The notes beneath the pieces were generated by a model, which worked only from the letters and a program-made list of their open reading frames with translations, did not search any database and was not told where the DNA came from. Both the position numbers and the translations under genes were made by a program. This document shows, piece by piece, positions 26,146 through 58,411 of a stretch of DNA of 64,000 nucleotides. The DNA lies in the sequence record MZ475891.1, one strand, 5' to 3'. Numbering within the stretch: position 1 is the first letter of the stretch; each line of letters starts with the position of its first letter.

Positions 26146-27909
26146 TTAGAATGCCTTACGTTCAACATTCGAATAATACGTTTCGTACGGCTCAGAATAC
26201 AACTCAGGACCGCGCTGCGCACGCACAGTAACATAGCCTGTGTGGCGATTCACTGCGGTGATTTCGATAGTAGGCTGTTTAGGCTTAATCGTGCCGTAGA
26301 TAGGCGCGTTCATCGTTGGTGGGTCTGTCTGAATCTTGTTTACAGATTGCAGTGCAGCACCAGACAGCGTAGGGAACTTAAAGCGCAATTCAGCACGCGT
26401 GCGGCCTGTAGCGATCTTGATACTACCAGCAGGCAGTTCAACGCCGCTCTGTTTCAGGTAAGCAGCGATGCGACGACCAATACCCGCCAATTGGTTCTTA
26501 GCGACAGGGTCCATCAGACCATCGAAGCTAATAGCAGCCGGAGGTTGATTCACTGACAGATGCATACCAGTGTTGAAGTAGCCTTCTGCGAGGAAGCGAT
26601 ACAACTGACGAACAATCTCAGGAGTGTTCTGTGCAATCACAGGCGTCAACAACTCAGGTGGGTTGGTCTTCATTGGGTCGCGGTATTCAACCTGACCCTG
26701 CGAGTAACCCATGCTGATATGCTTAACACGAGGATAAGCAGACTGCAATGAACCAGTAGAGCGAATCAGGATAGAGCCAGACTTCGCTTGATCATACAGT
26801 TCATCGCTGGTGGTTGTTGAGAACAGGAAGTAGTCGGTAGGCACAGCCATACGACCGATAGCTTCGATTGCTTTCGTCTGCACTTCTTTGATCGTCGAGC
26901 CGAACACTACACGACTGCGATTAGGCTGAGCAGTAGACACAGCAAAGAATGCACCGTACACTACCTTCTGGTCTTTGACGATAGGCGAAGCAGACTTAAC
27001 CTTTTGACCGCCAGGCAGAGGAGGTAGCTTAACGCCCACCAGCTTGCCTTTAGTGATTGCTTTGTTCGCAACAACAGGCTTCAAGGAAGACAGCAGCTTG
27101 TTCAACTCAGACCCGTCAAGAATCTTCTCCAGCGGAACAACGAGGTTCTGCGGCAGATAGTGTTTCTTGCGCAACGTATAGATAACGGTGTCTTTCTTGA
27201 TCTGTAACGGAGTAGCCATGTTACGACCAGCTTGACCAACAGGCTGGAACGTATTCGCTTTATCCTGCCCAACAGAGCCGAACTCTTTGTCAAACACAGA
27301 CTGACCGATGATGTTCGCTGCACGCAGATGACCACGCACGTTGAACACAATCTTAGGTTCATCTTTCATGCGCAACTCATAGCGGTCACGCGTCAGATAG
27401 ACCATGCTGAACTTGTCGCCTTTCTCCAGCTCAAGGTCATACTCGTCGTTAGCGTCATCGATAACAACTTTCTTACCCTGATAGGTAGCGTACACGCGAG
27501 CGGCAGCAGACTCCGAAGCAATCTTCAACGCTACGCCACAGTTAGACAGCGCGGTAGCATAGTTGGTTGCGTGGAACAGCGCGTCATTCGATTCCGTGAT
27601 AGCGACTTCTTTACCGCGTACACCCAGCGCAAGGTGGATAGCGCTAGAGCTGGACATGAACACAGTGTGACCTGTATCTTCATGCTTACCAGCAAAGGAC
27701 ATACCACTAACACGCGACACAGACAGCGCATTCAGGTGCGGAGTAGTGAACGTATCACCCGCAGCAAAGTCAAAGATTTCACCTTGACGCCACGCGTAAC
27801 CGATGTTGTTTGAACTCAAGCCAACAAACGCATCACCCACCTGTCGAATCGTAGTAGGGATAATGCTGAGATCGCGAACGATCTGATTTTGTTTCTGAAT
27901 GATGGTCAT
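26146..27909 (-). CDS. Putative internal virion protein with the shared ~60-aa domain
   Basis: 587 aa; IASESAAA followed by YATYQG...LEKGDKFSM...RYEL...PKIVFNV, similar to segments of 40618..41295, 49232..50362, 56465..58411. Confidence 0.65.
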   Translation of the reverse strand: MTIIQKQNQIVRDLSIIPTTIRQVGDAFVGLSSNNIGYAWRQGEIFDFAAGDTFTTPHLNALSVSRVSGMSFAGKHEDTGHTVFMSSSSAIHLALGVRGKEVAITESNDALFHATNYATALSNCGVALKIASESAAARVYATYQGKKVVIDDANDEYDLELEKGDKFSMVYLTRDRYELRMKDEPKIVFNVRGHLRAANIIGQSVFDKEFGSVGQDKANTFQPVGQAGRNMATPLQIKKDTVIYTLRKKHYLPQNLVVPLEKILDGSELNKLLSSLKPVVANKAITKGKLVGVKLPPLPGGQKVKSASPIVKDQKVVYGAFFAVSTAQPNRSRVVFGSTIKEVQTKAIEAIGRMAVPTDYFLFSTTTSDELYDQAKSGSILIRSTGSLQSAYPRVKHISMGYSQGQVEYRDPMKTNPPELLTPVIAQNTPEIVRQLYRFLAEGYFNTGMHLSVNQPPAAISFDGLMDPVAKNQLAGIGRRIAAYLKQSGVELPAGSIKIATGRTRAELRFKFPTLSGAALQSVNKIQTDPPTMNAPIYGTIKPKQPTIEITAVNRHTGYVTVRAQRGPELYSEPYETYYSNVERKAF

Positions 27910-27917
27910 ATTGATCC

Positions 27918-28352
27918 CTAATACGAAACAAGGCGGAAGGCATTCTTCTTGAGAAGATTCAAATTGCCTAACATGAGACTGTAGGCCATTGTGCCGTGCT
28001 CTTTAATAAGCTCGTCAGGCACAAGTGAACCGAAATAAATTGAGCGGTCTGGACGTGAGTTAATCTCTACGCCACTGGACTTCATTGCATTCGGTACGAT
28101 GAAGCACCAAGGCTCTGCAACGTACTTACCTTTCACATACTGAACTCTATAGCCAACGGCAACGCGCTGGCCTTTCGGCGGGCTGTATGAAAAGACATCC
28201 GTCTGCAATTCGAGGGCTTTCGATACGGAGAAAAGCGCCATAGTCAGAAAGCGTTGCTCGAATTGTGGAATGAATGCGTTGTCTTCGCATATCTTTTTCA
28301 GTACAGCCTCTTGCCGTGCTCGTGGGAACGAAGCGAAGAGGCTCAGGTTCAT
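27918..28352 (-). CDS. Hypothetical protein
   Basis: 144-aa ORF, 4-nt overlap with tmk. Confidence 0.65.
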   Translation of the reverse strand: MNLSLFASFPRARQEAVLKKICEDNAFIPQFEQRFLTMALFSVSKALELQTDVFSYSPPKGQRVAVGYRVQYVKGKYVAEPWCFIVPNAMKSSGVEINSRPDRSIYFGSLVPDELIKEHGTMAYSLMLGNLNLLKKNAFRLVSY

Positions 28353-28963
28353 CCGAGACGCGCCAGAATCTGTCGAACTACCTCAGACACAGATGCCGTT
28401 TCAGTATCGATAACAAGATCGAAACCACCAGGCACTTGCTTGTAGCGTTCGCTGTATTGCTCGAACACTTCTTTGGTCTGACGTTGTTCTATGCGGTCTT
28501 CACCACCAACGCGATGTTTACGGCGCTCTACCGAAGTCTCATAAGAAACATTCAGCAGCACAGTAAGGCGCTTCTCAGGTGCGAGCACTTCCCACGTATG
28601 ACGATAGATGCGATCATTGATATCCGAATCACCCGCTTGATAAACGAAGGTGGACGGATAACCACGATCAGCAATAATCATCGTGTTCGGTTCGTTAGCG
28701 AGAATACGCTCGTAGGAATTCATGGTCGATGAACGCGCGGCCAAGAACAGCAGCATTTCGGTGCGACTGTCCATATCTGTTGCGAGGCCGCCTCTGTCGT
28801 TAAGCAGAATATCACGCAGATGTTCTGACAAAGGAGTACCACCAGGCTCGCGCAGTCTCAGGACCTGAGAACCACGTTGTTGCAAAATTTCGGAGATTGC
28901 TGTGCAAACGGTAGATTTGCCAGAACCTTCGGGACCTTCTACTAAAAGATAAACAGAGTTCAT
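28349..28963 (-). CDS. tmk: Thymidylate (dTMP) kinase
   Basis: VEGPEGSGKST P-loop, LREPGGTPLSEHLRDILL, LLFLAAR, ADRG motifs. Confidence 0.93.
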   Translation of the reverse strand: MNSVYLLVEGPEGSGKSTVCTAISEILQQRGSQVLRLREPGGTPLSEHLRDILLNDRGGLATDMDSRTEMLLFLAARSSTMNSYERILANEPNTMIIADRGYPSTFVYQAGDSDINDRIYRHTWEVLAPEKRLTVLLNVSYETSVERRKHRVGGEDRIEQRQTKEVFEQYSERYKQVPGGFDLVIDTETASVSEVVRQILARLG

Positions 28964-28972
28964 AGGGATTCC

Positions 28973-29464
28973 TTAGGCAAATCGCCCACCACGCCATGCG
29001 GCCTTGATGAGCAACTTAGCCACGATTTCGTTCTTCATTGTCTTTCGCTTTGCATTGCTACGGACAAATGCAGAGCCGAACTTATTCACGACAATCAAAC
29101 CAACACCGCTCACGCGTATGCGTTCGATTATTCTATCGCCGTGAGATTCAAACAGAGCCTCGTCTATGGCAAAGTACATACGCATACAAAACGGTAGATA
29201 CTTGTGCCACTTCTTATCGGTATTGAAATCAGCCCAGCAACTCTTAACCTCAGTGATAATCATATCGCATTTGGTATTAAGGCAGAACACATCTGCTCTT
29301 AGATTGCCGTGCTTAATCAAACCCAGCTCAACATGACAGGAATAACGTTTGTCAATCCAATAACGCTGAGCTGCCTCAGTGATAAACATAGTCCTATCAG
29401 GACGACTCATTGAGGCAAAGACTGCCTGTGTTTGACGTTCAGCTTTGCGGCGCTTAAAGGCCAT
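28973..29464 (-). CDS. mmcB: MmcB-family PD-(D/E)XK DNA-repair nuclease
   Basis: RADVFCL...IITEVKSCWADFNTDKKWHKYLPFCMRMYFA follows the MmcB pattern RAD...EIKSS..DF..D.KW..Y...CDR.YFA. Confidence 0.8.
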   Translation of the reverse strand: MAFKRRKAERQTQAVFASMSRPDRTMFITEAAQRYWIDKRYSCHVELGLIKHGNLRADVFCLNTKCDMIITEVKSCWADFNTDKKWHKYLPFCMRMYFAIDEALFESHGDRIIERIRVSGVGLIVVNKFGSAFVRSNAKRKTMKNEIVAKLLIKAAWRGGRFA

Positions 29465-29909
29465 ACGAGTCGATAATGTCCAGCGCCTGAGCTAAAATTG
29501 GGCGGAGTTTCTTGTCCACCTTCTTTAGAGCTTTATCAGCACTGAACCACTTACGCTCACGCATGCCTGCTTCATCGTATTCAGTCAGTTCCTGCTTGAC
29601 CTTCATGATGAACCATTCAACGTTCTGGGCGCGGCCGGTCTTGCCTTTAACATACTTCATAATGTCGATGAAGTCTTTAGGCTTACCAAGAATGCCGCCT
29701 TCTTCCATGGCTTCTTTAAGCGCGGAATCCAGTGGCGTCATACCTTTCTCAACGCCGCCTTTAGGGAATCCCCAATTGTTTCCGTGTGTGGTGCGAATCA
29801 ATAAGATCTGCACTTCACCTTTTTTCTTTTTGTATGGGACAACGCCTGACTGCTTACGCGCTTTCTTTTCAGAAGGCAGCTTAGCAGAGAGTGACACATT
29901 CAGCATCAT
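29454..29909 (-). CDS. Nudix hydrolase (diadenosine polyphosphate/DIPP-like subgroup)
   Basis: SGVVPY...LLI...WGFPKGGVEKGMTPLDSALKEAMEEGG Nudix box; ERKWF. Confidence 0.9.
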   Translation of the reverse strand: MMLNVSLSAKLPSEKKARKQSGVVPYKKKKGEVQILLIRTTHGNNWGFPKGGVEKGMTPLDSALKEAMEEGGILGKPKDFIDIMKYVKGKTGRAQNVEWFIMKVKQELTEYDEAGMRERKWFSADKALKKVDKKLRPILAQALDIIDSYGL

Positions 29910-30406: not shown

Positions 30407-30436
30407 GGACCGTCTCCTTATTCGATAGTCTAAACT

Positions 30437-30444
30437 AAATTAGC
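30437..30444 (-). promoter_or_regulatory. Candidate late-promoter motif GCTAATTT
   Basis: Exact motif 30 nt upstream of the 30406 start, in a 39-nt intergenic gap. Confidence 0.55.
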
Positions 30445-35792: not shown

Positions 35793-38573
35793 TTACATAT
35801 AGTCCATAGTAATCATGTTCGTCATAGGGTCGTTCATGAATACTGGAATACCATCCAATGAATGTGCATTGCCTGGGCGACCTTGAGCAGGAACAGGACC
35901 TTGCTGAGGAGTAGCAGCACCTGTAACTTTAGCCGTATCTGTCGGTGCAGGAGGCGGCGCTACAGGCTCAGGCACTTCGGTACGAGCAACATCGCCTACA
36001 GATACTAGAGGCTGGTGATCGACTTCGGGCTGAGGTTGCTGTTTAGGCTCAATGCGTGATACTTGGTCCTGTACTTCTTTAGGCTGTAGCCCACCAGCTT
36101 GCTCATCGTTGACACGCTTACGCGCAGCAGGCAGCTCCTGACTGTTAATGTCTTTGCCTTGACCAGAAGCAACGAGGTCTTGCATCTTACGGTCGTAGTC
36201 TGCTTGAGACTGCTTAGGCGTGACAGCACCTTTGCCAGTCAAGTCTGGGACGTTTTTGTTTGCATCCACTTGCGTGTTCGCATAGTCCTCAGGCTTACCA
36301 GTGCCTTTCTTCAACTCAGGGAACTTCTCGGCAATGCGACGATCTTCATCGGACATATCTGTCAGCTTAGGCATCTTTACAGACTTATTTAGGTCTGCCT
36401 CAGATACTTTGAGCAGCACGTCCTTTTCGTTTTGAGCACGGTTCGCTACTGATTGTTGCGTCTGTGCTGAACTCGATTTGAAGTAACGATCGGTTGTCGC
36501 GGCTTTGTAGTCCTGAATGGTCTTAATCATATCCGCATCGGACATGGAGTTAACGTCTTTGCCTTTAAGTGCATTGGCAATAACGCTAGTACCAGCACCA
36601 TACTGAACTGCCGTACTGTACATCAGCTCCTTGACACCAGCACCACGCTTCGTCAAGTCTACACCAACATCGTTCTGCACTTTAGCAGCAAGTGGTGCGT
36701 AGTGAGTACGCGTAATGTAATCGCCCTGTGCTTTATCGAACTCTTCTCCTTGAGTGTTAGCAACGTCCTTGTACACAGAGTTGAACTGTGCTGTGCCCGG
36801 AGCAAGGCCACCGAAACGAGCAAGGAATGGTTTGCCTTCAGGACTGTTCAGGAAGTTAGTCATACTGCCTGTGTTAGTAGCAAGCTGGTGCTTACCGTAG
36901 CTTACACCACCAGCATCACCTGCGCCCGTAGACACAGTACCAACACCACGACCGCCTGATTCGAATTGCTCTGACACTGAACCAAGACCGCCCTCAGCAA
37001 TAGCCTTGTTAGCAATATCGGTTACTTGCTTGCTGTCCATACGACGAGAAGGCTGTGCACGGAACGGGCCTTGATACTGACCAGCACCAGAGCCAGGCAT
37101 ACCACCAGCAAGAGCGCCTAAGTTAAACGGTACAACAACAGGTGCAGGAGTCTTAGACTTGTCCAAGTTCTCAAGCGTTGTGTCGTTGTATTCATCCATC
37201 TTCTCTTGGCGATCTTTCTCACCATCAGCAATCATCTTGTCAGAGGTGTCGGTAATCTTGTCAGACACGTACTCACCAACAGAGCTACCGAAGTAGTCAC
37301 CTAGGATGCCGCCAATAGTAGCACCAAGAGCAGCGCCAGCAGCAGTCCCCGCTACAGGTACGACAGACCCCAATATGCCACCAATCCAACCGCCAGCCAC
37401 TGCGCCGATAGAGCCACCAGCAGTGCCACCAATGGCCGAGCCAGCAGCCTTCTTTTTAGCTCCAGCTTTCTCAGCATCTGTCATGTCCTGATCAGCATCG
37501 ATGTGTTGAACATCATTTGCGTATGAAAGGCCATTACCTAACGCTGGACCGATTACAGGGATGCGCTTAGAAGCACCCATAAGCAGTGCGCTGGTTCCCG
37601 CAACTGCAACGTCCTGAACAGCGGAAGGTGCAGTTGGTGTCTTAGCAGCGATAGTCTGTGCAGCACTATCGCCAGCTTGTGTTGTGTCTTGTTGTGCAAC
37701 GGATGGATTAACCGCAGCAGGAACAATGTCAGGCTTACCTGCACCTTCGTTGCTTGCGTTGTCATCAACAGAATCCGTGTCAGTCTTATCCTTGAGCCAG
37801 TTACCTACACCCAGACCAGCAGCGGCAGTAAGAGCAACAGCAGCAAACGATCCCCACTTACCAAGCTTACCCAAACGAGGGAAGCGCTCACGTAGAGGTC
37901 TGCGACGATTAGGCAAGTCACGACCTGGACCACGACGTTCACCACGGTTACGTCCATAGCGTCTACCACGTCTGCGACCTCTTCTGCGATCTGGCCCATC
38001 AAGGTCTATGCCTGGACCGTCATCCGCTGGTGGTGGACCATCGTCATTAGCAGACTTACCGCCTTCGCCATTCTGTTGTCCATACGGGTCAGACTTGGCT
38101 TTGTTCTTAGCGCGGAATGCTTCTGACTTCTCCCACGCTAACCATTCTTCCAGTGCTTTCTGCGTCTTCTGATTGACTAACGTACCGTCACGAATAGCAT
38201 CAACGATTTCATCACTGGAGCGCTCGCCTGAGATGAACAGGTCTTCAAGCGCAGACTCAACCTGTTTAGGATTCGGCACGGTAGCACGCGGCGATGGGTC
38301 CTGACTTAGGTTGATATTGATTGCACGTTCTTTCTCACGGGCAGCTTTACGCTCACGCACAGCACGGTTCTTAGCACGCGAACCTGGGCCAACATAATAC
38401 TCGTCTTCATCATCCACGAGATCATCGTCGTGCATGTTAAACGAGAAGTCAGGACCTTTCTTCCGCGCTTTGCGTCCTTTAGGCATACCCGCTACAAAGG
38501 AGCCTAAGCCATCAGCGTGCTCGATCATTAGTTCGAGTGCAGACAGCTCTTTCTCTTGAGGCTTAGCCATCAT
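35793..38573 (-). CDS. Tape-measure/hub protein with VgrG3-type peptidoglycan hydrolase domain
   Basis: Arg-Gly-rich segment, Gly-zipper hydrophobic stretch, then SEQFESGGRGVGTVSTG.GD.GGVSYG.HQL (~36410-36990) typical of VgrG3-like muramidases. Confidence 0.7.
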   Translation of the reverse strand: MMAKPQEKELSALELMIEHADGLGSFVAGMPKGRKARKKGPDFSFNMHDDDLVDDEDEYYVGPGSRAKNRAVRERKAAREKERAININLSQDPSPRATVPNPKQVESALEDLFISGERSSDEIVDAIRDGTLVNQKTQKALEEWLAWEKSEAFRAKNKAKSDPYGQQNGEGGKSANDDGPPPADDGPGIDLDGPDRRRGRRRGRRYGRNRGERRGPGRDLPNRRRPLRERFPRLGKLGKWGSFAAVALTAAAGLGVGNWLKDKTDTDSVDDNASNEGAGKPDIVPAAVNPSVAQQDTTQAGDSAAQTIAAKTPTAPSAVQDVAVAGTSALLMGASKRIPVIGPALGNGLSYANDVQHIDADQDMTDAEKAGAKKKAAGSAIGGTAGGSIGAVAGGWIGGILGSVVPVAGTAAGAALGATIGGILGDYFGSSVGEYVSDKITDTSDKMIADGEKDRQEKMDEYNDTTLENLDKSKTPAPVVVPFNLGALAGGMPGSGAGQYQGPFRAQPSRRMDSKQVTDIANKAIAEGGLGSVSEQFESGGRGVGTVSTGAGDAGGVSYGKHQLATNTGSMTNFLNSPEGKPFLARFGGLAPGTAQFNSVYKDVANTQGEEFDKAQGDYITRTHYAPLAAKVQNDVGVDLTKRGAGVKELMYSTAVQYGAGTSVIANALKGKDVNSMSDADMIKTIQDYKAATTDRYFKSSSAQTQQSVANRAQNEKDVLLKVSEADLNKSVKMPKLTDMSDEDRRIAEKFPELKKGTGKPEDYANTQVDANKNVPDLTGKGAVTPKQSQADYDRKMQDLVASGQGKDINSQELPAARKRVNDEQAGGLQPKEVQDQVSRIEPKQQPQPEVDHQPLVSVGDVARTEVPEPVAPPPAPTDTAKVTGAATPQQGPVPAQGRPGNAHSLDGIPVFMNDPMTNMITMDYM

Positions 38574-40617: not shown

Positions 40618-41295
40618 TCAGTCCTCTACAATAATAAGCACAGGTCTAACAGCATCATCGAACTTGATGAACGCAGCGCCAACAAGATAGCCACCCTTCT
40701 CTACTTGTTTCACGACAGCCTTTTCAAGATCTGTTTCCCACTTATCGCGCTGTGCGGGTTTGTAAGAAGCAAACGTCTCAGAAGCATCGTAGTAGTTATA
40801 GGTACCACCAGTAGGCATTGGGATACGTGCAAGGAACTCTAAGCGACTACAGTTCTTGAACGGGGTCTTGCGTAGCTCTTGCGTCAGCTTGGTGTTCTCT
40901 GATTTAGAGCCAGGCACAGCGGTGAATACTTTCTTAGGCTGAGGCTCACGAGGAGCAGCAGGCATCTTCTCACGCGCTGGCGTATTCTTGTCGCTGGCTT
41001 TCTTAACACGAATACCAGAAACAGTCCCTGTGAATGGACGACTGCGACCAAGCAACGAACGTGCGGCCGTAGCATCAACAACAAACACAACAGACGGGTC
41101 ATCACGGTGCAGCACATAGAACTTGTTACGTGCAGCGGCCTTGATACCGAATACGTCTTTGTCCTCAATATCCGCTTCGTGTTCTTTGTTCTCGATACTG
41201 ACCTTGCGCTTACCTTCAAAGCGATACCAGTCGCAGTCATTGATAGACACGATAGGTGTTTTGCGTGAAGCACTCTCGCTCAGAAAAATAAGCAT
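40618..41295 (-). CDS. Putative internal virion protein (N-terminal SESAS + shared ~60-aa domain)
   Basis: MLIFLSESAS...WYRFEG...IEDKDVFGI...FYVL...PSVVFVVD...LLGRSRPF. Confidence 0.7.
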   Translation of the reverse strand: MLIFLSESASRKTPIVSINDCDWYRFEGKRKVSIENKEHEADIEDKDVFGIKAAARNKFYVLHRDDPSVVFVVDATAARSLLGRSRPFTGTVSGIRVKKASDKNTPAREKMPAAPREPQPKKVFTAVPGSKSENTKLTQELRKTPFKNCSRLEFLARIPMPTGGTYNYYDASETFASYKPAQRDKWETDLEKAVVKQVEKGGYLVGAAFIKFDDAVRPVLIIVED

Positions 41296-45149: not shown

Positions 45150-46250
45150 TTAGCCTCGAACTGCTTTGGCAACGGAACGCACGTTCGCCAGAGTGAAGGA
45201 GAAGGTGCTTGACAGCAACCAGCCGCGGTCAGTGTTACCCTGGTTAGCACCAGAGGTAGGAGTAGACTGCGTACCGCCACGAGTGGTGTACACTGCATGG
45301 TAGTCCTGGTCAGCCAGAACATACAGCTCGCCCTGTTTCAGAACGATGTGCTCTGGAGCACGCATACCATCGGTAACCAGCTCCATACCCAGCAGGGTAC
45401 CCAGACGACCGGTGATCAGCAAATCATACTTAGACACTGGGTCCAGAGCAGAAGAGAACTGATCGTTACCGATAATGTCGTTCCAGTAGTCCCACGCCAT
45501 CACGGCGGTAGAGGTCGGCAGCGGCCATGAAGCAACGCTGTTTTTCAGGGTAGACAGCAGACGCGGAGTCAGGTCACCGTGAACGTAGGTGATCGGGTTA
45601 GCGATACCAACAGCTTCGTCACACGCTTGTTTCCACAGACGGTCTTCTGCAACCATGATAGAAGACAGGCCGTCTTGCTGCGCACGGTCCAGCAGGTCGC
45701 CGTTGATCTGGTCCAGATCCATTTTGCTTACGCGGATGTTGGATTTCAGTTCGAACTCAGCCGGCTGGTAGGTACGGCCGCGGAACTGGCGGTAACCGAA
45801 ATCGGTAGGACCAGTTGCGATGATTGCTTCTGCCTGGTGAATTTTCAGTTCGATACGAGCAATGTCGCCCTGACGAACGGTAGCACCCTTACAGACTTTG
45901 CGCAGCAGACCAGCACGCTCAGCACGGTCTTCGATAGATGCAACGATAGAAGCACCCAGCGAGTCCCACTTAGCGCCAGAGGTATCAGCAGCAGCTTCGG
46001 CGAACAGCTCAATCTTCTCAGCTTCTGACAGACCGTTAGAAGCGTTAGACTGTGAATGAACCAGCTCACCATTTTGGAACGCGTTAGCCAGACGGCTGAT
46101 CTGAGAGATCAGGTCTTTCTGGCTTGATGCGTTAATCTCACCAGTGCTTTGGCTCAGAGCTAATTCATTGCTCTTGCCGAAACGCAGGTCTTCAATCGGG
46201 GCGCCATTACGCAGAGTTACTTTCGCGCCGCGCATTAAGGAATTAGTCAT
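45150..46250 (-). CDS. Major capsid protein (HK97 fold)
   Basis: 366 aa, strongly biased codon usage, E-loop/P-domain-like pattern (P..FEL.S...V...DL; G.LG.L.GM....D), terminator-bounded operon after scaffold and protease. Confidence 0.8.
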   Translation of the reverse strand: MTNSLMRGAKVTLRNGAPIEDLRFGKSNELALSQSTGEINASSQKDLISQISRLANAFQNGELVHSQSNASNGLSEAEKIELFAEAAADTSGAKWDSLGASIVASIEDRAERAGLLRKVCKGATVRQGDIARIELKIHQAEAIIATGPTDFGYRQFRGRTYQPAEFELKSNIRVSKMDLDQINGDLLDRAQQDGLSSIMVAEDRLWKQACDEAVGIANPITYVHGDLTPRLLSTLKNSVASWPLPTSTAVMAWDYWNDIIGNDQFSSALDPVSKYDLLITGRLGTLLGMELVTDGMRAPEHIVLKQGELYVLADQDYHAVYTTRGGTQSTPTSGANQGNTDRGWLLSSTFSFTLANVRSVAKAVRG

Positions 46251-47071: not shown

Positions 47072-49168
47072 TTATGAGCAGCGCAAACGGGCCAGTTTAT
47101 CTTCGAACGAGTCAGTGGAAGCTGAACTCTGTGATTGAATAGGTGCACTATCTTCGTCACCCAGAAGCTGCGCTGCAACGCTTGGTTGCTGCGGCTTAAC
47201 AGGTGCGGTGACCTGCTGTTGAACTACAGGCTGAGCCTGCTGCACGGTACCGGCTGCGGCTTCGATTGACTGTGCAACTTCGTTCTGTGCAGTTTCAGAC
47301 ATAGACATAAGAGTCTGTGCTTTTGCCAGAGAAGTTGTCAGGAAATCTTTACCATGCGCGATAAACGCGTTTTGAATCAGCGCGTTCGGGTCTTTGATGC
47401 CTGCGGCAGACAGAGAGCGAACGAGAGAATCAACGATCGGGTTACGCACTTCACCCCAGTAGTTTTTGGTGATACCCAGCTGAGCAGAAGACAGGGCAGC
47501 AATCAAACGTTCCTGATGGGAAGCAACAGTGTCGTTGATGGTAGACGATACGCTGGTAGTGGCTTCGTTGATGCGAGCATCAGATTCAGCAACCAGCAAC
47601 TTGTCTACAGGCATTTCGATTTGATACGGCATAAAGCCATACGCTTCGACTGTACCTACAACACCGCTTTGAACCAGGCTGTGTGAAACGGCACGGATGA
47701 AATTATCAGTTGCGAAAGATTTACGCGCAACTTCTTCACCAACAACGTTAGACACAGAGTTGAACGTGGCGCGAGCAACTGGCTGGCCGTCGTAGTACAT
47801 GTGTACCGATTCGACTTTACCGCCGTTAGAACGGCTGAGGCTTACCAGGGTCGGGTCCAGTTCGCCGTACTGAGCTTGTACGGTAGACAGGCTGTCGAAG
47901 GTGCGATTAACGACTTTAGATTCAGAATCGAAGTCTTCATCGTCGAGGTCGAGATCATCTTCTTCCAGATCTTCGTCCTCGTCGAGGTCTTCGTCTTCAT
48001 CAGCGCCAGACTCAGAATCGAAATCTTCGTCTTCGTCTTCGCCTTCGAGGTCCAGATCGTCTTCATCCAGATCTTCGTCGTCGTCGTCGCCTGCACCAGA
48101 TTCGGAGTCGAAGTCTTCGTCATCTTCGAGGTCTTCCTCGTCTTCGTCGTCCAGATCATCTTCATCCAGATCTTCGTTGTCGAGGTCATCCTCTTCGTCT
48201 GCCTCTTCGTCTTCCTCTTCGTCTTCGTCGAAGTCATCTTCATCGAAGTCGTCTTCATCTTCATCACCATCAGATGATTCAGAATCAAAGTCGTCGTCAG
48301 AATCTTCGTCTTCGTCGTCGAGGTCCAGATCGTCTTCGTCCAGGATATCAATGTCGCTGTCGCTATCATCGTCACCGGAGTTAGATTCAATCGGCTCGTC
48401 GACCAGCGCCGCAGAGCAATGCGCACAGAAGACAGGCTCTTCATCGGAGCTTACAGTAAACGGCTGTTCGCATTTAGCGGAGCAGCTATAGATGTGAGCT
48501 TCGACGGTACCGTCAGCGGCAGCAGAAGACAGAGCAGTAACAGCTTCAGGGGCTTCCTGAGCGTCACAGCTATCAACAGCCTGGCCGGTGTACGGGTCGA
48601 ATTTGGCAACAGTAGCAGCGTTGAAGCTACCAGTGTTGGACAGCGCTGTGAACGTTTGAGCACCAGACAGGGCCTGCGCGAAGTTGCGTTGAGCTTCTTC
48701 GGCAGTCTCGCCAGTAGCGATCAGGCTCGCGTGTTCAATCTGTTCATCAGCGTTTGCGCTCTCAGCAAGGAACTGTGATACGCGTTCATCAGTGATTTCT
48801 GACAGGTCAGCAGAGCACGACGGGCAGCAGCCCTGAACGAGCGAAGCACTGTCGCTGATAACGTGGCTACCACAACCATCCAGACAGATAGTGTAATGCG
48901 CCTTCACGTCACCAGCAGAAGACTGAGACTGAACTTCGGCTTTCTCAACCAAATCAGGATGCTCATCCAGCAGTTCGTTACCGCCGGTTGGGTTGTAGAG
49001 GTCAGCGCCACTTTGCGAAGCAAAGCCCACACCGTCAGAAGAACCATAAATCATTAAGTTCTGGCCTAACGCAGTGCGACGAAAGTTCTCTACTGCCTGA
49101 TTATGGTTTTTACCGACACACAGGATACCCGCGAGTTGGGTAATCTTTGGCATGGTTAAAACCCTCAT
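47072..49168 (-). CDS. Putative prohead core/scaffold protein with Zn-ribbon motifs and long acidic tract
   Basis: CLDGC/CPSC and CSAKC/CAHC pairs; ~150-residue D/E tract (~47925-48375) with four FDSES; position between protease and capsid genes. Confidence 0.6.
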   Translation of the reverse strand: MRVLTMPKITQLAGILCVGKNHNQAVENFRRTALGQNLMIYGSSDGVGFASQSGADLYNPTGGNELLDEHPDLVEKAEVQSQSSAGDVKAHYTICLDGCGSHVISDSASLVQGCCPSCSADLSEITDERVSQFLAESANADEQIEHASLIATGETAEEAQRNFAQALSGAQTFTALSNTGSFNAATVAKFDPYTGQAVDSCDAQEAPEAVTALSSAAADGTVEAHIYSCSAKCEQPFTVSSDEEPVFCAHCSAALVDEPIESNSGDDDSDSDIDILDEDDLDLDDEDEDSDDDFDSESSDGDEDEDDFDEDDFDEDEEEDEEADEEDDLDNEDLDEDDLDDEDEEDLEDDEDFDSESGAGDDDDEDLDEDDLDLEGEDEDEDFDSESGADEDEDLDEDEDLEEDDLDLDDEDFDSESKVVNRTFDSLSTVQAQYGELDPTLVSLSRSNGGKVESVHMYYDGQPVARATFNSVSNVVGEEVARKSFATDNFIRAVSHSLVQSGVVGTVEAYGFMPYQIEMPVDKLLVAESDARINEATTSVSSTINDTVASHQERLIAALSSAQLGITKNYWGEVRNPIVDSLVRSLSAAGIKDPNALIQNAFIAHGKDFLTTSLAKAQTLMSMSETAQNEVAQSIEAAAGTVQQAQPVVQQQVTAPVKPQQPSVAAQLLGDEDSAPIQSQSSASTDSFEDKLARLRCS

Positions 49169-49231: not shown

Positions 49232-50362
49232 TTAGACTTTTCTGCTATCAATATCTGACTGAGGAATATAGCGATTTTCGAAGTATTTATTCACTACTTC
49301 GACACCGTTTAGCGTATAAACGTTACGCAAACTATCTCCCCATACCATTAGTTCTGCCAGCGTTGCAAAGTGCTCCGTAGGCACGGATTTAATGGTCAGT
49401 GCATTGTTCGAATCAGGATGGATTCGCTTACCACGAATGGCCTGATCAAACTTCATACGGTCTACGTTACGCAGCATAGTATGGTCCACAAAGTGAGCCA
49501 ATTCATGCGTCATAACGTGGGCCATACTTTTGCTGTTATATCCACCCAGCAGACGAACAAGCTGTTGTGGACTAATAGCGATAACACCGTACATAAAGCC
49601 ACGAATCATGTACGTGCTAATGTGAGAACCGCCTACATCGTTACCTTCTTGCCCGCCCAGAATAGAAACGTACAGACGCTTAAACGGCAGATTAACGTTC
49701 AGCCCAACAGCAGGCATTACGTTGTCCTGGATATCCTTTAGCACGAATGCTGGTGGACTAACACCGTTGACTGAGATGTTTAGGCCAGGGATATTCAGTT
49801 CATCTGCACCACGCACTTCGAGATGTACCGTACCACATTTAGGTAGTGGTTGAATTGCGTAGTTGTTTGGAGTACCACCAGCATAAGCAATATCAGAGTA
49901 TTGCAGAGGCGTAAATTTACCGAACTGAGGCCTGTCAAGTTCTCGACGTTGACGCGCTTCTTTGGATGCACGATCATCATCGATAGGAGTATCAACAGGA
50001 GGTTTTGGCTCGGGTTCAGGCGGTGGGATTGGCACTTCGGCAGCGGCAGGTTTTGGAACTTTCGCAGGCTTAGGCACTTTGACAGGCTTAGGCTTAGCAG
50101 ACTTCTCCTCGAGTGGAGTAAAGTCAAAGCTATCAAACAACGCATCAGGCTGAGCAGCAAAAGGTCTGCTATTAGCCAGTATCATTCCAGCGCTCTCCCC
50201 GCTGATTGCAACAGCTTGAGGGTACTTAGGGTGAGCGATGTAATAGAGGTCATCGTTAACTTGATGGAGACCTACGACCTCGCGTGGCTGCATACGCACA
50301 CCATTTGAAATCATAGTATCTCCACCTAAGTAACGGACGAATTTGTAGTCCGTTATATCCAT
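49232..50362 (-). CDS. Zinc metallopeptidase (HExxH) with N-terminal shared domain and Pro-rich linker; start revised to MDITDY
   Basis: VMTHELAHFVDH (~49493-49507) and downstream EHFATLAE; ATG at 50362 overlaps the TAA of the protease gene. Confidence 0.75.
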   Translation of the reverse strand: MDITDYKFVRYLGGDTMISNGVRMQPREVVGLHQVNDDLYYIAHPKYPQAVAISGESAGMILANSRPFAAQPDALFDSFDFTPLEEKSAKPKPVKVPKPAKVPKPAAAEVPIPPPEPEPKPPVDTPIDDDRASKEARQRRELDRPQFGKFTPLQYSDIAYAGGTPNNYAIQPLPKCGTVHLEVRGADELNIPGLNISVNGVSPPAFVLKDIQDNVMPAVGLNVNLPFKRLYVSILGGQEGNDVGGSHISTYMIRGFMYGVIAISPQQLVRLLGGYNSKSMAHVMTHELAHFVDHTMLRNVDRMKFDQAIRGKRIHPDSNNALTIKSVPTEHFATLAELMVWGDSLRNVYTLNGVEVVNKYFENRYIPQSDIDSRKV

Positions 50363-51141
50363 TAACGCATCCGCAGCAGGTGTTCTTTGTACGTTGCAGC
50401 ACAAGCAAACGCTGGGTCATCCACAGAGCTACACTCGAAACCAGTGAGGCCCTTACAGTCACGATAAACCAGGCGGCCTGTACGTGCATCCAAATACGTA
50501 GGCTTGTTGAACGCTGTGTGCGAGCAGAAGTTACGATTCTTCGGTGTTACCATCTGACCACAGATACTGCATTTATAAGCACGGTAGGTTGTGCCCTTGC
50601 TGTACGTGTTCAGTTCACCGCTGAGAATACGATCACAACGTTCCTTACAGCGCGTGCGGTCAAACGCCAGCAACAGAGTCAGACGCGCATGATTGCCACG
50701 GAAGTTTTTCAGCTTAGACAGGTTTGAGTCAAAGATCATGCCCATTGCTTGGCGATAGTCTTTGTTGTTGTGCTCGATAAACGTCGGCTTACCAATGAAC
50801 GTCTGATATGCAAGGCGTCCTTGATCAGGGTTAAACGTCAACCATTCCTGCAAGCTGAATGCATCACCGTTAGTGTTCGGCAGCTCCGTGATGTTTACCA
50901 CAACAGGCGCAATGATATAGTCACGGATATCACGCGAGGTGTTGTACATCTCAGCAGCTTTAGGCAGCCACACGTTAACGTCGAGGTTAAAAGATCCCGT
51001 CTCAATACCGAAACGCGAAGCATCAACACGAATAGACTTAGCGTTTCGGCTAACATCTTCTTTGTGCATATCAATCGCGTTCAGTCCGACGAGGCCCATG
51101 TCTGAGGTATCAAACGACTCAGACTTGATGAGCTGGGTCAT
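50362..51141 (-). CDS. Prohead maturation protease (HK97/herpes-type serine protease) with Zn-binding insert
   Basis: FIGKPTFIEHN (His), NTYSKG (Ser), CSICG...CSH insert, GFECSSVDDPAF. Confidence 0.75.
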   Translation of the reverse strand: MTQLIKSESFDTSDMGLVGLNAIDMHKEDVSRNAKSIRVDASRFGIETGSFNLDVNVWLPKAAEMYNTSRDIRDYIIAPVVVNITELPNTNGDAFSLQEWLTFNPDQGRLAYQTFIGKPTFIEHNNKDYRQAMGMIFDSNLSKLKNFRGNHARLTLLLAFDRTRCKERCDRILSGELNTYSKGTTYRAYKCSICGQMVTPKNRNFCSHTAFNKPTYLDARTGRLVYRDCKGLTGFECSSVDDPAFACAATYKEHLLRMR

Positions 51142-53549: not shown

Positions 53550-54458
53550 TTATACAAGAACGTTACCGCTATCCCACCACTTCTTGCCATAGATTTCAGA
53601 CAGGCGGTAGTCAAGCACGATTTGTTGGTCAAGATCGACCTGAAGGATATCGCGACCTAGTGCAGCGCTATAAACTGTTTTCTCCTCAGTGTATACGCGT
53701 ATCTCTAGTTCCATGTCGCCTTGCGAATACTTGGGAACGAACGGCACATTCAGATCGCCGTTGAACCCCTGACCGAGCGTATCGTCAAAGTAAGTAGACA
53801 TACGAATCTCGGTGCCCTGATTGATAATGGTGGGTGCATACACCATGCGATTGTTATACGCCGTGTAGTCGGCCACCGTGGACTGTTGAATCAGGCGGCG
53901 CTTATAGATGCGCGTTACGCCTTTGTCATCCACTACCGTACGATACTGATTGTAGAACCAGTTGATCTCATAGAACTTAACTGGCTTGAGGCCAGCAGAT
54001 GAAACCAACGAGGCAGTCATACGGTGATAGGTCTTCTCCGTATTCAGACGATAGAGCAGAATCTTAAACGCGTACCATTGGTAAACGTCTAACGTGATTG
54101 AGCCTGCATCTGATTGCTGAGTACCGTTAGTGAGGATATACGAGAAGCAATCGCCACCAACGTAACCGCTACGGGGATCGTAAATGAACGCATCACTAAA
54201 GCTATTCAGTTCGACAGTACCCAACAGTGGGTCGCTCACTTTGATTGCAGCAAGGCGCCAACCACGCTGGGCTGGAACCTTGTCGAGAACGCCTTCTGTG
54301 GGACTGTGACCTGTTAGCTCGTCGCGTGCGCCTTGCAGAATCTGATCGATAGTGATTTCAGTTTTACCTGAGTTCTTCACACGTATCGTTCTGTTTGGTG
54401 CTATTGGCTTATAGTTACGCCAGTAGTCAAACGTACAAGGCAAAGAGAGCATAGTCAC
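53550..54458 (-). CDS. Virion protein with Ig-like (Big_9/cadherin-type) domain
   Basis: FIYDPRSGYVGGDCFSYILTNG...ITLDV matches the Y.P..GF.G.D.F.Y.V.DG pattern. Confidence 0.65.
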   Translation of the reverse strand: MTMLSLPCTFDYWRNYKPIAPNRTIRVKNSGKTEITIDQILQGARDELTGHSPTEGVLDKVPAQRGWRLAAIKVSDPLLGTVELNSFSDAFIYDPRSGYVGGDCFSYILTNGTQQSDAGSITLDVYQWYAFKILLYRLNTEKTYHRMTASLVSSAGLKPVKFYEINWFYNQYRTVVDDKGVTRIYKRRLIQQSTVADYTAYNNRMVYAPTIINQGTEIRMSTYFDDTLGQGFNGDLNVPFVPKYSQGDMELEIRVYTEEKTVYSAALGRDILQVDLDQQIVLDYRLSEIYGKKWWDSGNVLV

Positions 54459-56425
54459 TCCAACTTATATTTACGTCGGAACTCTGCTAGACCCATGACA
54501 GGAATGCCTTTGTCCATGGCCTTCTGGAGTTTCGCAGAACCCGAGCCTGGGTCTTTGGCGATAAGAATGGTTGTATCTGCCTTCATGCTATCTGAGGCAG
54601 TACCACCAAGCTCAACGATACGCTGCATCAGTTCACGATCACGAATGCCCGTGAATGCAACGTTAACGCCTTTCAGCTTAGAACTCTTCACCTGAACGCG
54701 CTTCGGTGCCACCAGCTTAACACCGATTTCATTCGCAAGCTGATACGCAGACACGCACGCAAGAGCAATGTCAGGTGATTTCGTTTTGATGCCATGAATA
54801 TCCGAGATAGCTTTAGCGAGCGCCAGAGGATTCTGTTTGCGCACTAGCTTGTCAAGGTCAGGCACGCTATCGACCACTTTATCAAACGTAGTGTTAGCGC
54901 CACGCATGAAGTACGGCGAGCACGCTTTAAGCCACGTATTGACAGCAACGCCTGAGCGTAATGCTTTGAGGTCTTTCGCAAGCTGAGCGCCACGCGAGTC
55001 ACCAACAACTTCACGCAGCACACCGATAGTTGCAGCGAACAAACGGGCAGGTGTATCAATGCCAGACTCTACGAGCAGCTTCGACGTACTCGGTCCTGTG
55101 TTAGCAACGTCCAATCCTTTGAGGAATGAACTGAGCAGTCGAGTAGTGCCTACCTCAGTCTTGGTATTGATAACGAACTCAACGCCATTGACTTTGTAAG
55201 GCACATCAGGCAGCTTTGGCTTCTTCGCAGGCTTGAGAATCTCCATGATGTATGGGATTACCTTACCGCTACGAATCAGCTTAACGGTAGCACCCGGGCC
55301 AAGAGGTTTCTTAGCGTGAGGTGCAGTCGCTTTGCCTTTAGGCTTGAGATAGCCGTGCTCAACATAGAATCCATTGTGACCATTAGCACGCTGCACAGTA
55401 ACACCGCCAGTCATCAACGTCGGTGGGAAGATGATAACAGGCTGCAAGATACCGTACTTGGTTTCTTGATAGATAACATCCTCTACCTTAACTATCACTG
55501 TGTCAGCTTCTGCATTCATCTTAAACTTGAATGCGTGCTTTGGATTGGATGCAGTCGCTTTAGGGCTGGGTACATCTTCCGTGAGTACAACACCATCCAG
55601 CTCGTAGATAGCTTTAGACAGACGGCGCTCCAAGAACGCGATCAACTCATCTTCTGAGTTGAAGCGCTTTGGTGGCGTATGCCTAACGACTTCGAATCCC
55701 CAGCGCTCTAGCAGGGCGAACTGCTTAGACTGTTTGAGCGTAGCACCATCACCGCCGATGATAGAAAAGCACACCATGCGGACGTACTTGAACTCGGACG
55801 CTGTTTCAAAGTTACGCACAAGTCCAGATGCAGCGTTACGCGCAGCCTTGAAGCGACCACCAGCAGACTCATGCATCTTAGCCATGAATGTCTTTTGAGG
55901 AATGAGTGCCTCAAAGCGCAACACCGTCTGACCTCTGACTGGAATCTTTTTAGGGATTTTCATCGCAGGGATATGATGGGATACGTCTTTACCATGAGTA
56001 GCATCACCACGGGTATAAGCCTTTACAGGCACCCCGTCTTGATACACAATCTCAAGGCTCAAGCCATCGAGCTTGTCTGTTGCAACGTAGTCCACATCTT
56101 TCGACAGTGCTTTGGCAATCTGCTTCGAGCCAGCCTGAAACTGATTGAGACTTGCCATAGGAACAGGCAGCTTAACATCGGCATCATCACGCTGGCCAAT
56201 CTTACGCGCCAGCTTAGACTTGGGCCATTTAGCGTCGATGTAGTTACGGATTGAATCGTACACCGCATCGCTCACCAGACCTTCATCATCCGTATGATAT
56301 GCGTTGTCCAGAGCGGTTATTAAGTTACGCACTTGCGTCTGGTTCAAGGTGTCCAAGACCTTTTGAGGGTTCTTGGACAGTTGCTTGAGACTAACAGAGG
56401 CAGAAATAGAAAGCCTTACTTTCAT
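54455..56425 (-). CDS. ligA: NAD+-dependent DNA ligase
   Basis: Domain Ia AYH...VSDAVYD, KLDG adenylation motif, TRGD..G.DV, R..A.G, YELDGVV, AFKF, OB fold, C-terminal BRCT (VAFTG...GG...K..KA...GIPV); no tetracysteine Zn finger evident. Confidence 0.93.
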   Translation of the reverse strand: MKVRLSISASVSLKQLSKNPQKVLDTLNQTQVRNLITALDNAYHTDDEGLVSDAVYDSIRNYIDAKWPKSKLARKIGQRDDADVKLPVPMASLNQFQAGSKQIAKALSKDVDYVATDKLDGLSLEIVYQDGVPVKAYTRGDATHGKDVSHHIPAMKIPKKIPVRGQTVLRFEALIPQKTFMAKMHESAGGRFKAARNAASGLVRNFETASEFKYVRMVCFSIIGGDGATLKQSKQFALLERWGFEVVRHTPPKRFNSEDELIAFLERRLSKAIYELDGVVLTEDVPSPKATASNPKHAFKFKMNAEADTVIVKVEDVIYQETKYGILQPVIIFPPTLMTGGVTVQRANGHNGFYVEHGYLKPKGKATAPHAKKPLGPGATVKLIRSGKVIPYIMEILKPAKKPKLPDVPYKVNGVEFVINTKTEVGTTRLLSSFLKGLDVANTGPSTSKLLVESGIDTPARLFAATIGVLREVVGDSRGAQLAKDLKALRSGVAVNTWLKACSPYFMRGANTTFDKVVDSVPDLDKLVRKQNPLALAKAISDIHGIKTKSPDIALACVSAYQLANEIGVKLVAPKRVQVKSSKLKGVNVAFTGIRDRELMQRIVELGGTASDSMKADTTILIAKDPGSGSAKLQKAMDKGIPVMGLAEFRRKYKLE

Positions 56426-56464
56426 GCTTTTCTCCGATCGACATTAACACTCTTGTTTACAGTG

Positions 56465-58411
56465 TTATGATGCGATAGGGTCCTTGTTGACCTCGTAATC
56501 TTCCGCCATGTCGTACACGCGATTGAACAGCTTAGGCGCCATATCTTTCACATGCTCGGCATAGTCAAACAGGTTCTGCTTACGCGCACGATTGACACGC
56601 ACCTGACGTACTTCGTCTGGGCTATTCGTAATGTCATACAGCGTATACACAACGATGTTATCGGATGAGTTATGAGTGCTTACTTTGAGGACTACCCAAT
56701 CGCGTTGCAGCTTAGCATCAGCCTTGAAGCGGAGGACGTCGCCCTCTTCGGCTTCATCTGCACGCGCATCAGGAGTAGACTTGTTAGTTGCGGCAATCTT
56801 CTTCGCAGTCTCGGCAGCTTCTTTCTCTGCCTCAGCCACATCAGAGTCTTGGTCTTCATCCGCTTCTGTTTCGTCTACGGCATCAGAGGTATCGTCAGCG
56901 GAGTCGTCGGCTTCTTCGTCGTCATCTCCAGACGTATCTTCCTCGTCATCTCCTCCGTCGTCGGCATCATCGGGATCCACATCGGAGTCGTCATCTGAAT
57001 CGTCGGAGCTATCATCCCCATCCTCATCATCAGACTCTGAATCGCTATCGTCAGCATCTTCTTCTGCATCTGGATCGTCCTTTTCCGTTTCGTCGTCTGG
57101 GTCAACGTCACCGCCTTCAGGGTCATCCTCTTCCAGCTCGGAGTCGTCGTCGAGGTTATCCTCTTCGGAGTCGTCTGGCTCATCATCCTTGGTTGAGTTC
57201 TTAGCAGAGCCACCTTTCTTGCGAACCTTAGACTTAGGAGCAACTTCCTCTTCGTCATCATCTGGCTCATCAATGTCAGACAGGTCAAGCTCGGAATCGA
57301 CTTCGTTGTCTGCGCTATCATCACCGCCGAACATAGAACTAACGGTGTCCTCCAGACTGAATACATCACCTGCAAACGGGCTACGTTGAAGAATGTCTTC
57401 AAGGCGTTGCTCATCGAGGTCCTGCTCAAGGTCCAGATGTTCTTCGATAGCATCATCGAGGTTTTCATGCTCAATGACTTTAGGCAGACGACGACGATCA
57501 TTCAGGCCAGGGTCATCGGAGTAGATGGTACGCTGTGGTCCTGTAGGCGCTTCAATCTCACCGTCACGCACTTTGCGTCTGAGGTCACGCATCTCTGCGC
57601 TACGCTCACGCGCTTTCTTACGTGCTTCCTGTGCGAGTTCCTTGCGCTGTTGTTTGCGCTCAAGGGCAGATGCCTCACGACCTAAACGTTCAGCTTCTTC
57701 CTGTTCACGGCCTTCGCGATGGCGAGCACGACGAACCATACGACGATACTGTTTGATAGTATCAACATCAACACTACCAACAGGCCAGTCATTAAGAGGC
57801 AGAATGTTTGTGTCATGCACAATCAGATCGTACTGAGCGTCATCAACTTTCAGGAACAGGCCTTCTGTGTTGATAACGATACCGCCTTTGCCTTGACGCA
57901 AGAAACGCACGCCAATCATATCGTTGCGGTACATCTTATAAATACCCTTGGTAGTCTTCACAGGATACTCATTGCCCGGCACCATGCGCCATTGATAGTT
58001 GGCAAAGTCAACGCCATACACAGCTTCTGACTTAACCGATTTCGGCATAAAGCGAGGAGCATCAAACAGGGTGCGATTGATTTTACGCTCAAGGCTCTTA
58101 GCACCAGCAACGCGTGCAGTAGTACCGGCCTCACGTTTAACCACAGCTGGTGGCTTACGCAACTTAGAGCTACGTTCAATGAGGAACAGACCTGTCGTTT
58201 TGTCGAGAGGGAAATCGACGTGCGGCATGTCTGGGAAAATCAGTGTATAACGACCACCATTCCTGAGTGGCAGAATACCAAAAGTGTCGCCATTACGAAT
58301 CATACGTTTGTGTGATCGCTGCGTCACCTCTCGCCCACGTGAACCAGTAAACTGCATCCACGCGTACTTCGATACGGCATCTTCATATGATGCGGATTCG
58401 GAGAGTACCAT
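56465..58411 (-). CDS. Putative internal virion protein: SESAS, two copies of the shared domain, charged coiled coil, long acidic tract, C-terminal SH3/KOW-like domain
   Basis: Read directly from the translation; acidic tract ~56830-57330. Confidence 0.7.
   Translation of the reverse strand: MVLSESASYEDAVSKYAWMQFTGSRGREVTQRSHKRMIRNGDTFGILPLRNGGRYTLIFPDMPHVDFPLDKTTGLFLIERSSKLRKPPAVVKREAGTTARVAGAKSLERKINRTLFDAPRFMPKSVKSEAVYGVDFANYQWRMVPGNEYPVKTTKGIYKMYRNDMIGVRFLRQGKGGIVINTEGLFLKVDDAQYDLIVHDTNILPLNDWPVGSVDVDTIKQYRRMVRRARHREGREQEEAERLGREASALERKQQRKELAQEARKKARERSAEMRDLRRKVRDGEIEAPTGPQRTIYSDDPGLNDRRRLPKVIEHENLDDAIEEHLDLEQDLDEQRLEDILQRSPFAGDVFSLEDTVSSMFGGDDSADNEVDSELDLSDIDEPDDDEEEVAPKSKVRKKGGSAKNSTKDDEPDDSEEDNLDDDSELEEDDPEGGDVDPDDETEKDDPDAEEDADDSDSESDDEDGDDSSDDSDDDSDVDPDDADDGGDDEEDTSGDDDEEADDSADDTSDAVDETEADEDQDSDVAEAEKEAAETAKKIAATNKSTPDARADEAEEGDVLRFKADAKLQRDWVVLKVSTHNSSDNIVVYTLYDITNSPDEVRQVRVNRARKQNLFDYAEHVKDMAPKLFNRVYDMAEDYEVNKDPIAS

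Follow-up and report, generated by a model that had tools for sequence, protein, structure and literature searches.

The four KMPT-N proteins

The stretch of DNA analysed here (64,000 nucleotides, called the window below) is 100% identical to part of the genome of the Erwinia jumbo phage pEa_SNUABM_13 (MZ475891.1; 264,714 bp), window positions being record positions minus 62,000. Between positions 26,146 and 58,411 it contains four genes for otherwise unrelated proteins in which five segments of about 65 residues resemble one another. By profile comparison, these segments were confirmed as copies of the Pfam domain PF20294, KMPT-N ("KTSC and Metallopeptidase N-terminal fusion domain"). The genes of the region are all on the minus strand, and head, tail and DNA-metabolism genes are mixed in the block. 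In the GenBank record almost all genes of this phage, the four KMPT-N genes included, are annotated "hypothetical protein". The four proteins and the positions of their KMPT-N copies are listed here.

26146-27909, minus strand: 587-residue protein (p587) with a 131-residue N-terminal region, SESA, KMPT-N and a 383-residue basic C-terminal region of unknown function
27307-27495, minus strand: KMPT-N in p587, residues 139-201 (PF20294 E 8e-20, 71.2 bits)
40618-41295, minus strand: 225-residue protein (p225) with the leader MLIFLSESA, KMPT-N, a disordered basic and proline-rich linker and a 90-residue alpha/beta C-terminal domain
41041-41235, minus strand: KMPT-N in p225, residues 21-85 (PF20294 E 6e-19, 68.4 bits), predicted as six strands plus a helix at a predicted local distance difference test score (pLDDT) of about 90
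49232-50362, minus strand: metallopeptidase protein of 376 residues with KMPT-N at its extreme N-terminus and no leader, a proline- and lysine-rich linker and a zincin-like domain
50168-50347, minus strand: KMPT-N in the metallopeptidase protein (PF20294 E 2.6e-20, 72.8 bits)
56465-58411, minus strand: 648-residue protein (p648) with the leader MVLSESA, two tandem KMPT-N copies, a basic segment, an acidic tract and an 88-residue C-terminal domain
58169-58366, minus strand: first KMPT-N copy in p648, residues 16-81 (PF20294 E 3.1e-17, 62.9 bits)
57800-58009, minus strand: second, degenerate KMPT-N copy in p648, residues about 135-204

The PF20294 model, which has a gathering cut-off of 28.9 bits, matched all four proteins at 34-44 bits over that threshold, and its ranges agree with those of an initial annotation, made from the window's letters, that had described five homologous segments in these proteins. 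Pairwise identity among the copies is 23-30%. The initial annotation had proposed that profiles made from the copies should find one another, and for three of them this was the case: leave-one-out hidden Markov models (HMMs), each built from the three other window copies, recovered the copies in p225 (E 2.8e-13), p587 (E 1.8e-4) and p648 (E 6.7e-3), the best unrelated open reading frame (ORF) scoring an E-value of about 1-2. This procedure missed the metallopeptidase copy (E 11), for which the richer Pfam and family profiles are needed. When the domain was masked, each of the four proteins fell into a BLAST cluster of its own. A search of 1.84 billion representative proteins with the four-copy profile returned 70 matches; 69 of these also match PF20294 and the last is a spurious repeat protein. 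When all six frames of the 264,714-bp genome were scanned with the four-copy profile and a 71-sequence family profile, no further KMPT-N copy was found. The best extra match in that scan, at record positions 162756-163847 (E 0.5), was dismissed as phosphoesterase-like from its sequence alone.

On its own, the second copy in p648 scores 2.2 bits against the 71-sequence profile, which is not significant, and Pfam gives one stretch only in this protein. The same position is significant in many representatives of the p648 orthologues (E 2e-8 to 7e-4) and in gp078 of phage Lu11. When a profile of this region from 21 p648-family proteins was compared by hhalign with a first-copy profile built solely from other cargo families, the two aligned over 68 columns, which is the whole domain (96.4%, E 1.2e-9). 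On this profile evidence, residues ~135-204 of p648 are a degenerate tandem duplicate of KMPT-N, as the initial annotation had suspected.

The domain was described there as hidden, which it is not: it is already catalogued as PF20294, UniRef entries for orthologues from pEa_SNUABM_28, from Dickeya phage JA33 and from Yoloswag already bear the KMPT-N name, and the four proteins are additions to an existing Pfam family. The name "KMPT-N" was not found in the literature searched. One of the four proteins appears to have the architecture that the family name states, an N-terminal domain fused to a metallopeptidase. The family name gives no function, and no KTSC domain was detected in p225 or in the three other proteins (Pfam, E <= 1). 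Neither the conserved leader described below nor the degenerate tandem copy appears in the family name or searchable text.

The ORF of the metallopeptidase protein spans 49232-50404 (p390), and its likeliest start is the ATG at 50362, giving 376 residues. This start is preferred because it overlaps the stop codon of the prohead-protease gene (TAATG) and because the PHROG model aligns from that residue; the overlap also suggests translational coupling of the two genes. The sequence HELAH (49493-49507) is conserved in three orthologues, with a conserved acidic segment downstream. No peptidase family in Pfam or NCBIfam was matched by this protein, and as a query in PDB sequence searches it gave no significant match. 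In the RefSeq record NC_061451.1 (phage pEa_SNUABM_7), the coding sequence of its orthologue (26224-27288 of the fetched stretch L001) is annotated as starting about 16 codons past the onset of homology, cutting into KMPT-N. The acidic tract of p648 (56732-57511) has 260 residues and a net charge of -97, and p587 belongs to a PHROG of its own (32352, function unknown). One of the cargoes in pEa_SNUABM_13 is a zinc metallopeptidase, another is an extremely acidic protein and the other two are unknown domains, as diverse as the initial annotation had it.

In an AlphaFold model made from the 71-sequence alignment (mean pLDDT 84.9), KMPT-N has six strands and a helix, after which comes one more strand. 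Confidence is lower over the first ~17 residues, pLDDT being 57 for residues 1-10, 70 for residues 11-20 and 88-94 over the domain; the model of p225 has a mean pLDDT of 82.2. The top 25 PDB matches found by Foldseek were all SH3 or SH3-containing chains, with E-values of 0.04-1, template modelling (TM) scores of 0.44-0.6 and probabilities up to 0.99. The SH3-like C-terminal domain of retroviral integrase is among the weak matches. Matches to predicted structures were found in Y3, Yoloswag, PaBG and others. PDB sequence searches with the domain profile and the p225-family profile gave no significant match, and one family member has a sub-threshold match to Pfam SH3_2. Since the E-values and TM scores are weak, "SH3-like" is reasonable as a label for the fold rather than as a statement of relationship, and KMPT-N is predicted to be a small SH3-like beta-barrel followed by a helix. 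The likeness lies in the predicted barrel of five to six strands; the differences are an identity to SH3 below 15% and the extra C-terminal helix and strands, and binding of proline-containing peptides is not implied. The SH3-like fold in the initial annotation is thus borne out by the ranking of the matches but not by their statistics.

A short leader on KMPT-N proteins and elsewhere

Three of the four proteins carry the motif SESA ahead of their first KMPT-N copy.

27505-27516, minus strand: SESA in p587, residues 132-135, internal; SMSA in the Yoloswag orthologue
41269-41280, minus strand: SESA in p225, residues 6-9; the position of S-x-S-A is conserved in 36 family members
58391-58402, minus strand: SESA in p648, residues 4-7; SLSA in the Yoloswag orthologue

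These motifs end 3-11 residues before the Pfam-defined start of KMPT-N. The spacing reported in the initial annotation is therefore real, and it is conserved; the fourth protein, also as reported, has an N-terminal domain and no leader. Judged from alignments of the family, SESA is a case of a more general leader, h-S-x-S-A, that recurs across the family and in which x is E, L or I. Of 73 members, 45 have an exact S-x-S-A no more than 30 residues upstream of the first KMPT-N, in most cases beginning within residues 3-7, and most other members carry near variants. Of the central residues, 13 are E, 13 are L and 9 are I. The usual form is M-L-h followed by S-x-S-A (for example MLISISA, MLLSLSA and MLSESA), the p587 family having its motif at about residue 130, and the gap between leader and domain across the family is 0-11 residues, with a median of 6. 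Orthologues at 43-68% identity keep S-x-S while x varies (SESA is replaced by SLSA, SMSA or STSA). Because x changes between orthologues, the invariant part is the two serines and the small residue, not the glutamate. A cut after glutamate of the T4 or phiKZ type was set aside, as x is L or I as often as E.

The motif was counted over the whole genome using our own gene calls (334 ORFs), with within-protein shuffles as background. There were 60 occurrences of S-x-S-A against 33.9 +/- 5.9 in the shuffles, and 9 of SESA against 1.8. Within the first 25 residues 16 of the 60 were found where 5.9 were expected (binomial p 1.8e-4; permuted control motifs gave 1-8), so that a short leader is shared by 16 otherwise unrelated proteins. 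Several of these have no KMPT-N. They include a NUDIX hydrolase (29454-29909, minus strand; Pfam E 2e-14) that begins MMLNVSLSA, a NAD-dependent DNA ligase (54455-56425, minus strand) that begins MKVRLSISA, a 1944-residue helicase, a 183-residue protein and several proteins of unknown function. The 183-residue protein matches the C-terminal part of PHROG 832, labelled RNA polymerase ADP-ribosylase. The leader of the NUDIX hydrolase is present in Yoloswag (MEIIVSLSA) and absent in PaBG, and both it and the ligase leader look like N-terminal extensions relative to the PaBG orthologues. On enzymes, the leader was gained and lost over evolution, a pattern consistent with a portable tag. Two tandem paralogs of 331 and 333 residues are headed by a longer leader, M-S-LIKINL-x4-V-S-E-S-A; in Yoloswag the 331-residue type is one 545-residue protein in which the leader is internal. 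The leader bearers outside the window, among them the helicase, the 331- and 333-residue paralogs and the 183-residue protein, lie at record positions 146878-175022 and 207110-208591.

Related motifs were found in two proteins of head assembly encoded in the window.

45150-46250, minus strand: HK97-fold major capsid protein (NCBIfam NF042927 E 8e-84), with a conserved body from about residue 78
50362-51141, minus strand: prohead (head maturation) protease gene (PHROG 18299 E 1e-125), whose product is the candidate enzyme for the leader motif

The N-terminal extension of the capsid protein contains LALSQST (46143-46163), which reads LALSSST in PaBG, LALSSAT in Lu11 and LALSEST in Yoloswag; the capsid protein of phage RSL1 lacks the LALSxST motif. 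Near its N-terminus the protease has SESF (51112-51123), with SHSF in Yoloswag and SRSF in PaBG. LALSQST and SESF are possible sites of capsid maturation and of protease autocleavage, respectively.

Distribution, cargo and the PaBG virion

Among isolated phages, KMPT-N was found only in jumbo phages of the PaBG/Lu11/Y3/Yoloswag type: the Erwinia, Dickeya and Yersinia relatives, the Pseudomonas phages Lu11, PaBG and HRDY3, and phage NCTB. Except for HRDY3 and the Yersinia phage, these make up the "Lupandier group" of PMC7412058. In RSL1, whose capsid protein is 35% identical, KMPT-N was not found in the 41 kb around the capsid gene. Members of the family combine the domain with at least seven recurrent classes of cargo and with many singletons. 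Classes and single cases of cargo, with their numbers of representatives, include the following.

p225 type: 20 representatives
p648 type: 19 representatives
p587 type: 6 representatives
SprT-like peptidases: 5 representatives
type of the peptidase in the window: 2 representatives
SAP domain: 1 representative
Tad6-like region (Thoeris inhibitor family) N-terminal to two KMPT-N copies: 1 representative

KMPT-N is a portable module of the N-terminal part, and the linkers that join it to its unrelated cargo are disordered and either basic or rich in proline. The Tad6-like fusion is a 919-residue protein from a metagenomic contig (P0016; positions 8001-10760 of L014) with the Tad6-like region, an SESA motif and two KMPT-N copies. 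Neighbouring paralogs of 698 and 708 residues start MRVLVSQSA and MELNLHSLAA.

PaBG has four KMPT-N proteins with five copies in all: gp89, gp107, gp217 and the product of a small unannotated ORF. In gp89 the domain is fused to an SprT-like peptidase, and the gene for gp107 sits between the portal and terminase genes. The protein gp217 has two copies, and its gene adjoins the ligase gene, as that of p648 does here. The small ORF, between gp84 and gp83 (record ~55973-56407; 10974-11408 of the fetched stretch L007, minus strand), encodes a leader and a partial KMPT-N (E 0.0012). Its end lies three codons upstream of the gp83 start, and gp83 has a near-identical leader.

The sole proteome for this phage group is a set of 14 Coomassie-visible virion proteins of PaBG (PMC7412058, Table 1). 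In PaBG, the counterpart of the leader-bearing 1944-residue helicase is its orthologue gp202 (N-terminus ...LNSLSAA). Band 1 of the virion is gp202, and gp83 is also a virion protein, both by mass spectrometry (PMC7412058, Table 1). The LIKINL(L/A)E leader is common to gp83 and the 331- and 333-residue proteins, nothing else being detectably shared. The idea that gp83 is detached cargo of a p587-type protein was rejected (BLASTP E 0.046). During maturation the mass of the PaBG capsid protein falls by about 20% (PMC7412058, section 3.2), and several proteins are reported in that paper to be processed. Mass-spectrometry notes were not found in the 28 kb of the Lu11 GenBank record that were examined.

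Possible roles of leader and domain

The initial annotation took KMPT-N to be a capsid-targeting or core-binding module; nothing was found to show that it does the targeting. Since the leader is also present on proteins that lack KMPT-N, the domain probably does not do the targeting itself, and the leader is the better candidate for targeting or cleavage. As the most economical reading, we tentatively prefer one in which the phage's prohead protease recognises and cuts the leader, which may also serve as a tag directing proteins to the prohead, resembling the capsid-targeting sequence (CTS) of T4 with a different motif. Cleavage would leave KMPT-N at the new N-terminus, where it would act as a common docking module, keeping the cargo in the head through the core, the DNA or other KMPT-N proteins, for delivery with the genome. 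The data show that the copies are homologous and modular, what class of fold they have, that their distribution is restricted, and that the leader is conserved and enriched at N-termini; cleavage, packaging and docking by KMPT-N are inferred, and anchoring or docking by KMPT-N inside the head is favoured with low confidence. The leader-bearing gp202 and gp83 in the PaBG virion, the mass loss of the PaBG capsid protein, the position of a PaBG KMPT-N gene between portal and terminase genes, and the overlap of the metallopeptidase gene with the protease stop codon are in keeping with this reading.

In T4, a propeptide of 10 residues, the CTS, is enough for foreign proteins to be packaged (PMC9026906). 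The likeness to the T4 system of CTS and gp21, which cleaves Alt and internal proteins, consists in a leader of ~5-15 residues at the extreme N-terminus of unrelated proteins, with a related motif in the capsid N-terminal extension and near the protease N-terminus (PMC9026906; PMC5694885). Unlike in T4, the motif in pEa_SNUABM_13 is h-S-x-S-A and not L/I-x-E, and a folded domain follows the leader in some proteins. In phiKZ and SPN3US the cleavage motif is A/S/G-x-E, compared with L/I-x-E in T4 (PMC5694885). The internal head paralogs of those two phages are similar in that a multi-copy module occurs in late jumbo-phage proteins behind propeptide-like N-termini, with a copy number that varies among relatives (PMC5694885); they differ in belonging to another phage lineage with another cleavage motif. 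None of the four proteins matched PF12699, the phiKZ-like internal head family (Pfam, E <= 1), and no other family was common to them and those head proteins. The kinship with phiKZ-like head paralogs suggested in the initial annotation is therefore an analogy only.

Several observations weigh against the reading of the leader as a protease site and of KMPT-N as a dock. Yoloswag, PaBG and Lu11 lack the leader on the ligase, so that some instances of the leader may be due to chance. The presence of the leader on proteins without KMPT-N means that, whatever the leader does, it can do without the domain, and the metallopeptidase protein of pEa_SNUABM_13 has the domain and no leader. Cutting at the motif would remove a folded N-terminal region in the p587 family and in the Tad6-like fusion. 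For the prohead protease, no Pfam, NCBIfam or PDB sequence match points to a family or specificity, and the similarity of KMPT-N to SH3 is statistically weak (E >= 0.04). Lastly, none of the PaBG KMPT-N proteins (gp89, gp107, gp217 and the small ORF product) is among the 14 virion proteins (PMC7412058, Table 1), which is weak negative evidence because of the Coomassie-band method. The interpretation offered there is, overall, partly supported.

A wider version of the preferred reading is possible, if rather doubtful. By analogy with T4, the h-S-x-S-A tag, sometimes placed after LIKINL, might be the functional counterpart of the CTS in jumbo phages of the PaBG, Lu11 and Y3 type, loading a changing cohort of enzymes into the head for injection, while KMPT-N would anchor a subset of them after removal of the tag. 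The candidate cohort would then include the NUDIX hydrolase, the NAD-dependent DNA ligase, the 1944-residue helicase, the protein matching the ADP-ribosylase PHROG and the KMPT-N proteins.

KMPT-N might instead be an SH3-like domain that binds nucleic acids and functions in the infected cell and not in the head, tethering peptidases and other cargo to DNA, in which case the leader would be an unrelated signal for processing or turnover. The family is basic overall, with a mean net charge of +4.5 over the domain and an isoelectric point above 8 in 81% of members, and the linkers that come after the domain are basic too. Fusions to SprT-like peptidases, which are DNA-dependent, recur in the family, and one fusion to a SAP domain, a type of domain that binds DNA, was found. 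The weak fold match to the SH3-like C-terminal domain of retroviral integrase points the same way. However, three of the four strong copies in the window are neutral (net charge 0), no DNA-binding family was matched by sequence, and the genes lie in the late structural block, with the domain tightly coupled to the leader. We regard this explanation as unlikely.

Less likely again is a role for KMPT-N as a homotypic or heterotypic docking domain that brings its proteins to the zinc metallopeptidase, with that enzyme, and not the serine prohead protease, cutting the adjacent S-x-S-A. Such a role would fit the fact that the peptidase is the only KMPT-N protein in pEa_SNUABM_13 without a leader, the recurrence of peptidase fusions in the family and the overlap of the peptidase gene with the prohead-protease stop. 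It would also fit the suggestion by Iyer et al. that a conserved jumbo-phage zincin may act in maturation cleavages (PMC7824862, section 3.4.5). The SprT-like peptidase fusions do carry the leader, however; many leader bearers have no KMPT-N with which to dock, and the motifs resembling the leader in the capsid protein and at the serine protease's own N-terminus suggest that the enzyme is the prohead protease.

It is slightly more improbable still that the four proteins are tail or baseplate accessories and KMPT-N a structural domain for attachment or decoration, without a link to the head interior. This idea draws on gene order: the p225 gene lies between two tail-tube-like genes, here and in Yoloswag, the p587 gene is near PAAR and VgrG-like genes, and that of p648 adjoins the gene for a 1397-residue protein and genes annotated in RefSeq as tail sheath. 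Head and tail genes are, however, interleaved through the whole block, and a PaBG KMPT-N gene is flanked by portal and terminase. The leader motif, moreover, is shared with the capsid N-terminal extension, and an acidic tract and a peptidase would be unusual for tail decorations. Chance or composition as the source of the similarity among the segments, which might be suspected from the 23-30% identity and from a fifth copy and a left-out metallopeptidase copy that are not significant alone, is already refuted by the scores of four copies under an independent curated model (34-44 bits over threshold), by the profile-profile result for the fifth (E 1.2e-9) and by a predicted fold that is confident and consistent.

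By itself the domain finding adds little, placing four "hypothetical proteins" in a Pfam family of unknown function. The newer element is the conserved leader, together with the set of proteins on which it is found; these provide a testable idea on the processing, and perhaps the packaging, of internal proteins in barely studied jumbo phages, together with a list of candidate packaged enzymes. If true, the leader would be part of a second capsid-targeting system, distinct in sequence from the T4 CTS, and KMPT-N would gain its first function; the tag could then be used to load foreign proteins into these capsids.

Two other genes of the block may be mentioned. In its tail and baseplate part, a 926-residue protein (35793-38573, minus strand) matches the C-terminal domain of VgrG3, a type VI secretion system spike protein (PF21277 E 3e-64). 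A 698-residue protein (47072-49168, minus strand), called "ATPase" in RefSeq, had no match in Pfam, NCBIfam or other families; it is rich in cysteine near residues 100-230 and has four S-x-S-A motifs. Its gene adjoins the capsid gene in PaBG, Lu11 and RSL1 as well.

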